From NCBI GenBank assembly GCA_907165135.1, contig OU015566.1:12710001-12774000 (forward strand): 64,000 nucleotides of DNA. Direction: 5' to 3'. The position numbers and the translations under genes are program-made. Each line of letters opens with the position of its first letter. Position 1 is the first letter of the stretch. Below, in pieces: positions 1-54,300 of this stretch. Under the pieces are notes generated by a model. That model saw only the letters and a list, made by a program, of their open reading frames with translations. It was not told the DNA's origin and did not search any database. The DNA is from Oikopleura dioica (Eukaryota > Animalia > Chordata).

Positions 1-2313
1 TTTCTCTTCTTACCGCGGTCAAATCTTCTGGATCGGTCGAGACTTTCTTTGAAGATTTGTAGTAAAAGACCTGAACGACTGTAAGAGAGATTTTCAAGGT
101 ATTCTACCTGGCAGATGATAAGGCAATCGACTGTAACTTGGATTGAGCCACAGAGAATAAATTGGAAAGGCTGATTCAGAAAGACGAAATATCCTGTTTT
201 GAAGATATCCCCAACGAGCCAGCCGAGAACCATGAACATTGACATTCCAGTCGCTAAAATAACTGTAAAAGGGTTCCCAAGCTACTTGTCTTACTTGAAC
301 TATTCTGGTAGTTTTTCCATAGCTGAGGCGTGGCAAGAAGGGATTCTGTTCCTAGCGCGAGGAAACCAAGGATATTGAAGTAACTGGCTACAATTGAGTT
401 TGGGAGTTGAAATATTCACGATACTCTTACGTGAGTGAAGAAAAACATAAGTGGTAAATGCAACAACGATCCAAAAAAGAACCATGAACTGGAGGTAATC
501 AACAAAATACGTCCAGTTCCAGAACTCCTCTGGTTTCAGGCAGGGCTGCACAATTGGATTGGAATCCAATTGGTTTCCAATTCCAATTGGATTGGATTGG
601 TAAATTGGTTGGAAAAAGGGCGGGAAAATCAGGGTCTGTCCAATTGGACAGCCCTTCCAATTGGAAAATGGGGGTCCAATTGGCAACTGGTAGCCAATTG
701 GTAAATTGGCAAAATGATTGGATCGAAGCACCTCTTTTCACGCGGAAATGCCAAATTATGCTTGAATTAGTGCCTCAAACGATCAGTTCGTCAACAATTT
801 TCTCAAAAAATCGAAAATTTCAAAACAGCCATATTTTGGCTTCTTAGTGTGCCTGAAAGTTCAATTCATCATAAAAACTTGTTGACCAGGGAGCACTTTT
901 TGACCAATAAAAATCCAAAATTTTAGCGAAATTGGGACTTTTTCGTCAAAAAGTCCGATTTTCAAACGCGATTTTGAGGGCTTGCCAAACTGCCTGAAAG
1001 CGCCTATATTGCCCAAATGTCCGAAATGCCCGCTCTTGCCCGGCCAAATTTTATGGGCTTAGCTGTCCGAATGCTCGGCCGAACCCTTTTTCCCCGAATG
1101 CCCGATGCCGATTCGCTTTAACCCCTATACGCGAAGCTGCCTAAAGAACCCCCTTACCCGAAGTGTACAATTTTTGTCGATTTGGCCTTCCTCTCAAGAT
1201 AATCTTTTCAAAGTATCAGATTATACTAAATCTATCATTATCTTTCGAACTGCACTTTTACATTTTCGGTAAAATTGATATTTAGTGCTAAAATTGGGGA
1301 AAGAAATTTTAACACTATAAAATTTATTATGTGATAATTATGAAAAATACTCATCTGAGCCATTTTTAACGGTGATTTTCGAATTCTCCATACTAAAAAA
1401 CCTAAGAATAAACTAAAACTGAAGCAAAAATGAGAAAAGGGAATTTTTTTCTTCCTTGGAGCGCGCGAGGTGGCGTGAGAAAATCAGTACTGGTGCAGTG
1501 CTCACTGGGCTTATCACGCGGAAATTTTGCGGAAAGGTGGGCAAGTCTTGTGCAAATACTCATTTGAGTTTTCAGGTCATTCTGACCCACCAGCTCCATT
1601 GGGCGAGCGACTATATCCCGAAATCGACAAAAATTGTACACTTCGGGTATAGGGGTTAAAAATTCTCTCGTTTGTTAATTTTAAAGGATTATTTAAAAAT
1701 TTTAATTTAAAATTTAAATGAACTAAAAAAAAACTGACTTTTCCAATTAGAATCCGATTTTCAATTGGAATTTGGCTGTCCAATTGGCAAACTCGTGCTA
1801 ATTGGAAGCAAGATTCCAATTGCCGATTGGTCCGCCAAATTCCAATTGGAAATTGGAATTGGATTGGAATTTGGTTGGATTGGCAAAATTTGGGTTGGAT
1901 TGGATTGGCAGTTGGTTGGAAAAATCCAAATTTTTTTGCCAATTGTGCAGCCCTGGTTTCAGGTCGGCCATATATCGCTCAGAGCCATTTTTCTTGCTGT
2001 GGTTGACTCGTACGACAAGCTCGACAAGAGCGAACATGGCGAAGATCATGACTACTGCTTGAAGGAAGAGAGCGGTCTCGTAGACTTCGCCAACGCGGAA
2101 GAAAATCCTCGAAGAGTGTCGAAAAAGGTTAAAGAAAATACTCGTGTACCTGAGAGAGTTGGCGATGAGCAAGACGAGACAGACATGTTTAGAAAATGAA
2201 CCAGTCGTTCGCGTTTCTCGAATTTGTTGGTACTGCGGGAGATAGGGCAGTGCGCCCCCGAAGACCATAAAAACATCGGGCAAGAAGTGAAGAAGAAATT
2301 TGATAAATGACAT
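1..2313 (-). CDS. SLC66A2: PQ-loop repeat transporter (PQLC1/SLC66A2 family), multi-exon; the 3' end is at or beyond the window edge; an exon is interrupted by a MITE
   Basis: MVFGGALPYLPQYQQIRETRTTGSFSKHVCLVLLIANSLR (first PQ loop). The frame continues across the insertion as ADLKP|EEFWNWTYFVDYLQF, then GFLALGTESLLATPQLWKNY and GMSMFMVLGWLVGDIFKTGYF (second PQ loop), matching PQLC1. Confidence 0.9.
541..1955. mobile_element. hAT-like non-autonomous element (MITE), 1415 bp, inside a PQLC1 exon
   Basis: Perfect 17-bp TIR CAGGGCTGCACAATTGG (541-557 / 1939-1955), 8-bp TSD GTTTCAGG (533-540 / 1956-1963), subterminal CCAATTGG/AATTGG arrays, no transposase ORF. Confidence 0.93.
1122..1655. mobile_element. 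piggyBac-like MITE nested in the hAT element
   Basis: TTAA TSD (1118-1121 / 1656-1659). Ends are CCCCTATAC...GTATAGGGG, with a further inverted repeat CCGAAGTGTACAATTTTTGTCGATTT (left copy offset by a ~27-bp insertion). Confidence 0.8.
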
Positions 2314-2477
2314 CTTTTGATTTCTACTTTTCTACATTCTAAAATTTATCGAAAGTAAGAAGATTTGCGAATCTGAAAGTACGTTGAGCTTCAACGGTTG
2401 AAGAGAGAGGGAATGAAATCAATATATAATGACAAGAGAGAATTATCTGTAGAGAGGAAGAAACGCAACGCTTGGGA

Positions 2478-51300: not shown

Positions 51301-54300
51301 CTAGAATATTCAGATACAGTACAGCCTCTCTGTATAAATGATGAAGAATTTGACCTCGAAAGTGGAAGTGAAGCTTTTATCGCGGGCTGGGGCCTAGTCA
51401 AAGAAGATGGATCAGCTTCACAATTTTTGAAGGAAGCAAGAATTCCGATTGTCTCTAACGAAGAGTGCTCAGGTCAATGGATAGAAAACAATCGCTAAAA
51501 TGAGAAATCTTTGCTTCGCAGAAGTTTTTAAAAAAGTCTATCCCTTTCAAGTTCCCTACGGAGATGACTTCAAAGCTGAAACAATGTTCTGCGCTGGCTA
51601 CGCCCAAGGAGGAATTGACTCGTGTCAGGGAGATTCCGGCGGTCCTTTAGTTCTTTTAGAAAATGACGTTCCAACAGCACATGGCGTCGTTAGCTGGGGA
51701 GTTGGCTGTGGAAGAGCAGGAATGTACGGTGTTTATGCTAAGCTTGTTGATAGCAAGGTATGGATGCAGAATGCGGCCGGGGAAATGGGACATGCGGTTT
51801 TTAGGCCAACAACGACTCCAGGAAGCGCTCTAAAGTTTTATTTTTAATGTTTTATTGCGCTGAAAAATTGCGTAAGCCGAAAAACTAAACCATAAATCAA
51901 AAGAGCACTTATCAGCTCAAGTTGCAACCACACCACATCCTCTTCTGACGCTTCTCACGCCGTTCGATTCTGGCTGCGGTGCTTTCGATTTGCCACAATT
52001 CGGTACTCACGACACAGGCGCAACCGATGGGGGCAACGTGAAACCCTGGCCGTTTATGGTTCGCTTCTCCGGCAAATGCGCTGGAAGTTTAGTGTCGAAC
52101 GCGCACGTTATTACATCCGCTCACTGTTGCAGATTTGAAAGTGAAGGTTTCCAATTCACCGATTTCGAGGTGGAACTTGGTTTCATTCCAAAACAAGGGC
52201 GATTTTCTGAGTCACGAAGGATCCATAGCATCTTATTGCATCCTGGAAATGTGGAAGCAAAGCTTTCAGGTGATCTCTGTCTGGTTCAACTTGATGAGCC
52301 AGTTCAATTCAACACCTTTATCAAACCAATTTGCCCAACTGACTCTCTCACTGCATCGCCTATCACTCACTTCTTCGCTGGGAAATGGACGCCAAATTCA
52401 AACACAATCGAGGAATTCGTAATGAGCAGCATGAACGAGACCTCTTGTGCCTCCGCCGTCTCGCGCTCCTTGTTTGCTGATACTGTTTGTGTTGAGGGCG
52501 ACGCTCAGGTTGACCCCTGCGATACAAACTCAGGCGCACCGTTGGTCGGGGTTATAAACAATAGATTACGACTTCTTGGCGTAGCGACGGCTAGCTATGG
52601 ATGCAATTCTGAGAATTTGCCGAATCTTTACTCATCGATCTCTTCCTACAGCCTTTTCTTCACAAACGGATTCCAGCAACTTGCAGATGCTACTTCAACA
52701 ACAACTACCACAACAACAACCACGAGCACAACTACTACGACAACTACGACAACAACAACTATCATTCCTCATCTCGCCGATCTCCCACCAAGATGTGACT
52801 CAAAATATGATCTTCTCAACGCAAATGTCTTGAGCGATGAAGACGGCAAAATCATCAACGGACAAAATGCAAACACTGAAGAATGGCCCTGGTACGTCCA
52901 ACTTCGCGGTTGCGGTGGATCAATTATCGGTCGAAGATTTGTCCTTACTGCAGCGCATTGCTGCCAGGGCAATCAACTGGGCTTTGAAGCGAACATCCGC
53001 GGTCAGAAAGTTAAAATGATCAGAAAACGCAATCATGGCGGCTTTACCATGCAGCTTGACTTCGACTTCTGTCTCTTATTGACCAACAAGCCGATTATGT
53101 ATAATGACAGAGTTCAGCCCATCTGCATGATTGAGCAAGGAGGTGCACCTCCAGAACACGGCGAAGATCTCTTTGTTGCCGGAACTGGAGTTGGATCTGG
53201 TAAACGGCTCAAGGTATACTACCTTAAAAATGTTTTCTTGACAATCTTCGTTCTAGGAAGTGCTTGTACCTTATATCAACTATAGCACGTGTCGCCTTGG
53301 TTATGGCGATAGAATCAGATCTGCATCAATGTTTTGTGCTGGTTACATGGAGGCAGGGTTCTAAATCGACTAGTCGAGTTTCGACTAAAGTCGAAGTCGA
53401 GTCGAGTCTTAGTCGAAAAGACTAGCTCGACTCGACTAGACTGGTTGTTAAAATAAGTCGACCCGACTCGACTCGACTTGACCCAATGAGTCAACTAGAT
53501 TGTCGACTAGTCGAAAAAGTCAAGAGCAATATTGAGGAGAAAGTCGAAAAATCTAGTCGAATAAGTCGAAAATCTAGTCGAAAAAGTCGAAAAAAATCAC
53601 TATTTTGCTTTCGACTTTTCGACTACGCTTTCGACTTTCGACTAAATTTCGACTTTTCGACTAATTTTCGACTTTTTCGACTAAATTTATATATTTTTCC
53701 AGTTTTTCGACTTTTCGACTAATAAGTCGATTTAGTCGACTCGACTCGACTCGACTCGACTAGCGATTTTCAAAAACGCTTTCGACTCGACTCGACTCGA
53801 CTTCTGAGATTCAGCTCAGATTTAGAACCCTGCATGGAGGGTGGCAAGGACGCATGTCAGGGCGATTCAGGCGGTCCTATCGTGCAGATAAAAGACGGCA
53901 GACCAGTGCTTATCGGTGTCGTCTCGTGGGGCGAAGGCTGTGCTAAGGAAAACAGACCTGGTGTTTATGGAAGAATCGCAAAAGCTGAACATTGGATTAT
54001 TGAAACCGCTGAGGAAATGTTCCAGGCGGTACATGGAATGGACGTTGTGAATCCAACTATCACACCGACAACAACCACTACGACCACAACTACGACCACC
54101 ACCACGTTTACGATCCCACTTGAGTTCCAAGAGGGTTCAGCTGAGGAGAGTGGGGACGGATCTGGAGACGGATCTGGAGAAGGATCGGGATCAGGTGACT
54201 TTGAATTCTCGGGAGAAGGATCTGGAGAGATCGAGGTCGATTTTGAGCCAGAACCAACAGGAGCGGATTCTAGTGCTAGAAACAAAATTCTTATTCAGGC

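Follow-up and report, generated by a model that had tools for sequence, protein, structure and literature searches.

The 64,000-nt stretch of Oikopleura dioica DNA analyzed here (OKI2018_I69 chr1, positions 12,710,001 to 12,774,000 of the plus strand; GCA_907165135.1, OU015566.1; Okinawa lineage), referred to below as the window, contains five outer miniature inverted-repeat transposable elements (MITEs), which we designate E1 to E5; a further element is nested within E1. Open reading frames (ORFs) are broken by E1, E2, E3, and E5, and in each case the frame is continuous once the element and one copy of its target site duplication (TSD) are taken out. With a probability of about 70%, we interpret these as recent, still-polymorphic insertions of non-autonomous DNA transposons of several families into coding exons, at least one of which became a functional spliceosomal intron at once. 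A preliminary description of the window had proposed intron gain in progress by unrelated MITE superfamilies acting as an introner-like system. The underlying observation was confirmed, and its interpretation as intron gain by such a system was partly supported.

E1, a hAT-like composite MITE of 1415 nt (541-1955) with the terminal inverted repeat (TIR) CAGGGCTGCACAATTGG and the TSD GTTTCAGG at 533-540 and 1956-1963, lies in a PQ-loop transporter gene (g3467, SLC66A2/PQLC1-like). The gene occupies 1-2313 of the minus strand, with its start codon at 2313 and its 3' end beyond the start of the window. Its identity was assigned from a match to PF04193 (E value, 1.4e-21) and from the annotated protein Oidioi.mRNA.OKI2018_I69.chr1.g3467 (P0003, 231 amino acids). 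Window positions 1-5313 are 100% identical to the corresponding part of OU015566.1. Removal of E1 and one TSD copy gave the continuous minus-strand frame ...VRVNHSKKNGSERYMADLKP|EEFWNWTYF..., and orthologues from other lineages were uninterrupted at this site (P0001, with ...VRVNHSKDRSERFMGDMKPGDFWNW..., and P0002).

Read runs were compared with window positions 1-5100, namely the RNA run X26, the DNA runs X25 and X27, and X4, a set of raw RNA reads from 2026. X26 belongs to the same study as X25, which is the DNA run containing the most window words (0.87 of them). As the X26 contigs skip 14 small CT..AC introns (equivalent to GT..AG on the minus strand) and carry spliced-leader-like 5' ends, the run was taken to represent RNA. 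A 671-nt X26 contig with no differences to the window joined position 529 to position 1953, skipping 1423 nt, which equals E1 plus 8 nt. The word depth of this junction contig was 176.6, compared with 170 to 207 for neighboring genes. The RNA-supported exons of the PQ-loop gene extend to 68 and over 106-253, 295-387, 431-529, 1953-2106, and 2149-2268 or beyond. Although the 529/1953 joint has an 11-nt ambiguity, just one register, the first, ends in AG, and it places a GG donor after an exonic CAG. The E1-derived intron (530-1952, minus strand) would accordingly be 1423 nt long, GG..AG, and in phase 1, and its removal restores ...ADLKP|EEFWNW.... The joint predicted for E1 by the GG..AG model of the preliminary description was thus found in RNA, contrary to the GT..AG structure of the public annotation.

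In genomic DNA, X25 contigs covering 1-567 and 1930-5100 entered E1 from both flanks, unbranched and with no differences to the window. X25 probably represents the assembly individual, and its contigs contained neither a joined (empty) form nor a second haplotype at E1. X27 is genomic as well, since its contigs do not skip introns, and its haplotype is divergent, differing from the window at 23 places in 1-540. The joined form of the E1 site is seen in an X27 contig of 128 nt (depth, 42.6), with differences at 2002 and 2017, which is an empty E1 allele on this divergent haplotype. It overlaps the left-flank contig, which ends at 540, by 30 nt, and this fits adjacency in the assembly graph. The RNA contig bears the reference letter at 11 of 11 exonic sites that distinguish the empty haplotype, and none of the three X26 RNA contigs in 1-5100 differs from the reference. 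The E1 stretch is missing from the project RNA (X26), yet the site is filled in X25 DNA, the RNA and DNA coming from different animals within one project. The E1 data are explained most simply by transcription of the filled reference haplotype, with exact splicing removing the 1423-nt stretch. For E1, insertion into an exon, recency or polymorphism, and exact removal at the RNA level were all observed.

E2 and E3 lie in an orphan multi-pass membrane protein gene (29771-32516, plus strand; 305 codons without both elements) with small GT..AG introns of 40 nt (29837-29876) and 43 nt (32037-32079). E2 (30027-30647) is a Harbinger-like MITE of 621 nt whose TIR starts GGTGCGCTTTCAATTTAATGTGCC, flanked by the TSD TTA at 30024-30026 and 30648-30650. 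E3 (30804-31916) is a hAT-like MITE of 1113 nt with the TIR CAGGGTTCCAATTTTG and the TSD GTATTGGG at 30796-30803 and 31917-31924. In an ENA metagenome contig (L002, from ERZ27290310) that matches the window at about 96% identity over 4.6 kb, this gene is present as an unbroken ORF of 304 codons. This contig is empty at both sites in the form predicted, with a single TTA and a single GTATTGGG, and E2 and E3 are polymorphic for that reason. This comparison of genomic alleles establishes E2 and E3 as polymorphic exon insertions. Presence or absence in other haplotypes had been named as a check on the preliminary description, and its outcome was positive: E1 is empty in X27, E2 and E3 are empty in L002, and the three elements are therefore recent or polymorphic.

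The window allele of the orphan gene differs from L002 by 11 synonymous and 9 non-synonymous changes, a ratio of non-synonymous to synonymous polymorphism (pN/pS) of 0.22. The indels are a 3-nt in-frame difference in exon 2 and a 4-nt difference inside the predicted 43-nt intron. The intact ORF in L002 and the pN/pS of 0.22 indicate that the orphan gene is real and constrained. No Pfam match and no Atlas family were found for it, and an annotated model was not found within the protein length range searched. The predicted intron at 32037-32079 is 39 nt long in L002, so that a prokaryote-style gene caller read through it there (P0132).

The predicted E2-derived intron (30028-30651, plus strand) would be 624 nt long, GT..AG, and in phase 1, with its GT formed by element bases 2-3 and its AG by the A of the TSD and the flanking G. 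Its predicted spliced product is the sequence of the L002 empty site. In a computed fold (-397.6 kcal/mol; z, -36.5), the E2 RNA would pair end to end as a nearly perfect hairpin of 300 bp, with only UUAG free at the 3' end. For E3, no exact register ending in AG was found among all restoring cuts checked. A hypothetical E3 splice analogous to that of E1, GG(30807)..AG(31900), would leave a stop-free, in-frame stretch of 27 nt encoding QQNWNPGIG.

E5 (53354-53832) is a hAT-like MITE of 479 nt with the TIR CAGGGTTCTAAATC and the TSD CATGGAGG at 53346-53353 and 53833-53840. It splits ...FCAGYMEG|..., the conserved catalytic-serine motif of a trypsin-like domain, which is unbroken here in the paralogous domains of this gene. 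The predicted E5-derived intron (53353-53839, plus strand) would be 487 nt long, GC..AG, and in phase 0. Reading through E5 leads to a stop after three element-derived codons (...YMEAGF*), so that, with E5 unspliced, the polyprotein would end short of the catalytic serine of this domain and would lack every domain that follows. A modeled fold of the E5 RNA pairs the TIRs (z, -13.3). A protein search with the ORF just after E5 returned generic trypsins only and no Okinawan allele or transcript, with a length filter that may hide long ORFs, and a search with the domain upstream of E5 returned distant multi-trypsin proteins only.

Inverted-repeat analysis and direct reading recovered all five outer MITEs that had been claimed, with perfect TIRs and perfect TSDs throughout. 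The claim that four of them sit in coding exons was likewise borne out, by orthologues that read through the E1 site, by the intact L002 ORF at E2 and E3, and by paralogous domains continuous at E5. The TIRs are distinct, and none has a match in the window beyond its own pair (approximately 0 expected by chance). Four elements are hAT-like with 8-bp TSDs (E1, E3, E4, and E5) and one is Harbinger-like with a TTA TSD (E2), which fits the two superfamilies named earlier. The 8-bp TSDs are perfect at 4 of 4 hAT-like elements and are present in one copy at the empty sites of E1 and E3, and the TIRs start as YARNG (CAGGG in E1, E3, and E5; TAGGG in E4) and are perfect over 14 to 21 nt. At E2, TTA is present on both sides, with a single TTA at the L002 empty site, and the TIRs are perfect over at least 24 nt. 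Judged from TSD length and TIR ends alone, E1, E3, E4, and E5 appear hAT-like, and E2 resembles PIF/Harbinger-type (Tourist-like) elements. The elements themselves encode nothing. Because their internal sequences differ, as do their subterminal repeats (CCAATTGG in E1, GAGTGGA in E3, TCGACT in E5), E1, E3, and E5 represent separate families.

For each exonic element, all cuts restoring the original sequence were enumerated by brute force. Exact registers were GG..AG only for E1 (minus strand, 1952 down to 530), GT..AG for E2 (30028-30651), and GC..AG for E5 (53353-53839), in agreement with the claim that three of the four exonic MITEs are exactly restorable with these donor and acceptor pairs. 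The E1 register uses TIR bases 4-5 and the CAG just past the TSD, which happens to match the CAG of the TIR. At E1, E2, and E5, the exon ends in AG directly before the G-starting donor because the target is duplicated. In each of these registers one splice site lies in the element and the other is completed by the TSD or flank, as in introners, and for E1 this arrangement is supported by RNA.

The expected frequency of such registers was estimated by simulating insertion at each position of the 16.4 kb of coding sequence in the window. For elements of the hAT CAGGG type, 7.4% of sites offered an exact register with G[ACGT]..AG ends, a figure that fell to 3.2% when only GT and GC donors were allowed, and elements of the Harbinger type had one at 14.3% of TTA/TAA sites. 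The probability of at least three of four elements being restorable was approximately 0.003, before allowing for target-site preference and with four elements and a donor set picked post hoc. Restorability no better than chance, which would have counted against the preliminary description, was therefore not what was seen in the window, target preference being left out of this figure.

We propose that the spliceosome could use the duplicated target, in which an AG in or beside the TSD would do double duty, providing the last two letters of the exon ahead of the donor and also the 3' splice site. As the donor, a G-starting dinucleotide at the TIR edge would be used, namely CAG|GG from TIR bases 4-5 at E1, G|GT from element bases 2-3 at E2, and GC from the TSD G and the TIR C at E5. 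Pairing of the TIRs may draw the intron ends together, and this could let a long insertion act like the usual tiny introns of the host. The known tolerance of O. dioica for AG|G-non-T donors would allow such introns to function. Exonic insertions lacking an exact register would mostly be purged. E3 might persist because it is spliced in frame and almost exactly, or because the gene is dispensable and the allele is null. We infer that E2 and E5 are probably spliced and that a multi-family introner-like system may operate under a selective filter.

Non-GT/AG introns account for 11% of introns in the OKI2018_I69 assembly (PMC8008620), and GA donors in O. dioica are preceded by a conserved exonic AG (PMC7072748). 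The GA-AG introns of the window had been put forward earlier as a sign of host tolerance, and one of them is supported by paralogue alignment. This putative GA..AG intron of 69 nt (47052-47120, plus strand; AAG|GATTGG...GAAAG|ACC) lies in the same protease gene as E5, and its removal would give a product (...AGWPG) colinear with four paralogous domains.

Several points weigh against the interpretation of these insertions as new introns. Among the exonic elements, RNA support is limited to E1, and population data are limited to E1 to E3. The chance estimate is based on four elements and on a donor set chosen after the data were seen, and 3 of 4 hAT TSDs end in GG, so that a preference for ...AGG targets could yield restorable sites without selection. 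At E1, an exactly spliced product and an empty allele are identical in sequence. The X26 RNA probably derives from pooled cultured animals of unchecked genotype, in which an empty (pre-insertion) allele with reference flanks would give the same contig. The left side of the X27 joined contig consists of 19 unique and 11 shared letters, just below the 31-letter bridging rule. Finally, contigs drop rare variants, and unspliced or mis-spliced E1 RNA may exist beside the junction.

The alternative that survives best, although we regard it as unlikely, is that E2, E3, and E5 abolish or reduce gene function and are not spliced exactly, such null or hypomorphic alleles being tolerated because the line is a laboratory one or because the genes are dispensable and redundant. 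The lack of an exact register at E3 would fit this explanation, as would the 17 similar domains of the protease gene, the early stop on reading into E5, and the presence of two insertions in one orphan gene, which could mean relaxed constraint. However, that gene is under purifying selection as judged by its pN/pS, and restorable sites occur above chance. Furthermore, the predicted E2 intron has canonical GT..AG ends and that of E5 has GC..AG, the commonest non-canonical pair, and the host removes a 1.4-kb MITE at E1 despite its weaker GG donor.

Presence/absence polymorphism alone is an improbable explanation of the E1 data. The restored PQ-loop transcript would then come from empty alleles in the culture, with the filled alleles left unspliced. 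An empty E1 allele does exist in X27, and the likely pooling of the animals and the identity of the two products in sequence both leave room for such a source. However, the RNA contig matches the filled haplotype at every distinguishing exonic site, with no differences over 671 nt, whereas the assembly individual of the same project is filled and lacks the empty form. The identity of all three RNA contigs across 1-5100 to the reference suggests a culture near-fixed for that haplotype here, and the junction contig is as deep as the contigs of neighboring genes.

Removal of E1 through a cryptic GT..AG intron, as in the deposited g3467 model, is very improbable. The public annotation P0003 has exactly this structure, in which the donor follows ...VELV and the CAG that ends the TIR is the acceptor, giving ...VELVPCLKPEEFWNW. 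P0003 thereby lacks 20 residues at conserved positions (VRVNHSKKNGSERYMADLKP) and gains PCLKP from the TIR end in their place (1948-2012, minus strand). Orthologues, however, retain these 20 residues, and the 671-nt X26 contig, which joins 529 to 1953, is continuous over 1953-2106 and contains the 20 codons that P0003 deletes, contradicting the cryptic GT..AG intron for the major isoform. P0003 was consequently ruled out as a guide to E1 splicing. The public g3467 model is wrong at the E1 site because predictors do not allow such introns, and MITE-born non-canonical introns are probably mis-modeled elsewhere in the OKI2018_I69 annotation too. Least probable of all is an assembly artifact in which long reads caused MITE copies to be misplaced in exons. 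In its favor, these are multi-copy families in a Nanopore-based assembly (PMC8008620), but independent short-read X25 contigs cross both E1 boundaries, 5 of 5 elements have perfect TSDs of a length fitting the TIR type, and empty alleles differ from filled sites by exactly the element plus one TSD.

The origin of new introns from insertions in coding exons has precedents. Maize Ds and dSpm, non-autonomous elements studied by Wessler and colleagues in the late 1980s, are reportedly spliced from exons by means of donor sites at the element terminus. E1 resembles maize Ds in being a non-autonomous element of the hAT type removed from pre-mRNA after insertion into an exon. In maize, such splicing is reportedly usually imprecise and leaky and yields altered proteins, whereas the E1 product is exact.

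Closer in phylogeny is the appendicularian Fritillaria borealis, for which MITE-derived non-canonical introns have been described (Henriet et al. 2019, as summarized in PMC11282704 and PMC13326754). The two cases share the animal class, elements with TIRs and TSDs, species-specific positions, and a splice site supplied by the TSD, and the likeness extends to removal by a permissive U2-type spliceosome with no U12 system. The Fritillaria introns are mostly AG..AC or AG..AT, fixed, and very numerous, whereas those considered here are G[T/C/G]..AG and polymorphic. The present elements are 0.5 to 1.4 kb long and belong to several superfamilies in a host with introns of about 47 nt, and one of them is supported by RNA.

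In the introners of Micromonas, Aureococcus, and other organisms, a non-autonomous DNA transposon gives one splice site (Huff et al. 2016; Gozashti et al. 2022, PMC9860276). The registers described above share the division of labor by which the element gives one splice site and the TSD or flank the other, resulting in exact removal (PMC9860276). However, an introner family by definition has intronic copies in the hundreds to thousands that are nearly identical, whereas the MITE families here appear to be ordinary ones, suited to this role only where the target sequence chances to allow it. The introner survey PMC9860276 makes no mention of O. dioica. An account of the model of intron gain by transposon insertion at AGGT or protosplice sites lists Oikopleura cases of Denoeud et al. 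2010 (Yenerall and Zhou 2012, PMC3443670). This model likewise has a duplicated target giving AG|G at both ends and exact removal (PMC3443670). The Oikopleura evidence listed there is indirect, whereas filled and empty alleles, a transcript, and non-GT donors derived partly from the TIR are available here. A literature search, in which Denoeud 2010 and Henriet 2019 were known via citing papers, returned no account of specific MITE-born polymorphic O. dioica introns. The principle is already known from the Fritillaria MITE introns and from introners, and the cases in the window would add further examples.

The origin of new spliceosomal introns is a long-standing question that has been approached mainly through protists or through introns that are old and fixed. 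The window provides filled and empty alleles of the same exon in a culturable chordate with a 65-Mb genome, together with a transcript from which a composite transposon of 1.4 kb has been removed exactly, probably via GG..AG. E2 (GT..AG) and E5 (GC..AG) are further candidates, and E3, which has no exact register, is a natural control. Questions that become testable include whether the permissiveness of a spliceosome turns transposons into introns, how efficiently a first-generation intron is spliced, and whether selection sorts insertions according to their target sequence.

Tentatively, and at somewhat less than even odds, the window may reflect a wider process in which introns are now being created throughout the genome by ordinary MITEs, with three or more superfamilies (hAT, Harbinger, and piggyBac) taking part. 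Exonic insertions yielding AG|G-N...AG would be spliced exactly on arrival and would shrink later, and they would be the main source of lineage-specific introns and of the 11 to 12% of introns with non-GT donors. If so, the birth rate and fitness cost of introns would be directly measurable in a laboratory chordate while the alleles still segregate.

E1 contains a piggyBac-like MITE of 534 nt (1122-1655) with the TSD TTAA at 1118-1121 and 1656-1659 and the ends CCCCTATAC.CGAAG. Its TTAA TSD and CCCC...GGGG termini would be those of a piggyBac-type element. An X27 contig joins 1117 to 1656 and skips exactly 538 nt (534 plus 4), so copies of the outer family without the nested element exist. An X26 RNA contig (depth, 8.7) matches the nested element over 459 nt with no differences and represents another copy, as its flank differs. 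The nested piggyBac-like family looks very young. The E1 family is multi-copy, with a word depth approximately 10 to 30 times that of single-copy sequence in X25. When metagenomes were scanned for the E1 TIR, 44 soil and marine contig matches to a single end were obtained, 0 of which had a second TIR or extended similarity, and these were judged to be chance matches rather than family copies.

E4 (36496-37448), a hAT-like MITE of 953 nt with the TIR TAGGGTAAATCACTAATAATT and the TSD CTCATTCT, lies inside a GT..AG intron that a C2H2 (ZNF622/REI1-like) gene already possessed. This intron, 41 nt long without E4, now spans 36470-37471 (1002 nt). The palindromic arms of E4 are 413 nt long and 91% complementary. 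E2 and E4 are both palindromic over nearly their whole length, and in pre-mRNA they would form double-stranded RNA hairpins of hundreds of base pairs that could be substrates for double-stranded RNA pathways.

X4 was discarded as an RNA source for this haplotype, as just 8 partial reads matched, all in one conserved stretch, and it comes from another O. dioica lineage; its study mates X5 and X6 presumably do so too. No window words were found in runs X7 to X9. Marine metagenome and metatranscriptome runs X29 to X39 contained 5 to 21% of the words of window positions 1-6000. Such environmental data could yield wild allele frequencies for the insertions, an ENA metagenome assembly having given a 4.8-kb contig of the Okinawa type.

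X26 contigs at 3300 and 5024, the 5' ends of two minus-strand genes, extend with the loose letters GTTAGACAATCGAAATCGG(ACT). The reverse complement of GTTAGACAATCGAAATCGG(ACT) presumably corresponds to the 3' portion of the spliced leader of O. dioica, and the genes with 5' ends at these positions appear to be spliced-leader trans-spliced.

The protease gene that contains E5 is a very long multi-domain trypsin-like gene (42526-60406) whose exons reach 1522 codons and whose domains are joined by Thr-rich (ACN-repeat) linkers. A 1509-amino-acid protein from elsewhere (P0136) is 72% identical to 45910-48765; it was set aside as a witness for the E5 site because it covers another part of the gene and is silent on E5. 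Beyond this gene, 61022-63687 contains a tandem duplication with a spacing of approximately 852 nt, in which the blocks 61022-61523 and 61875-62446 are 81 to 92% identical. The same stretch includes an inverted copy, with arms at 62154-62320/63521-63687 and 62385-62447/63373-63435, and this arrangement suggests a small gene in three copies, one of them inverted.

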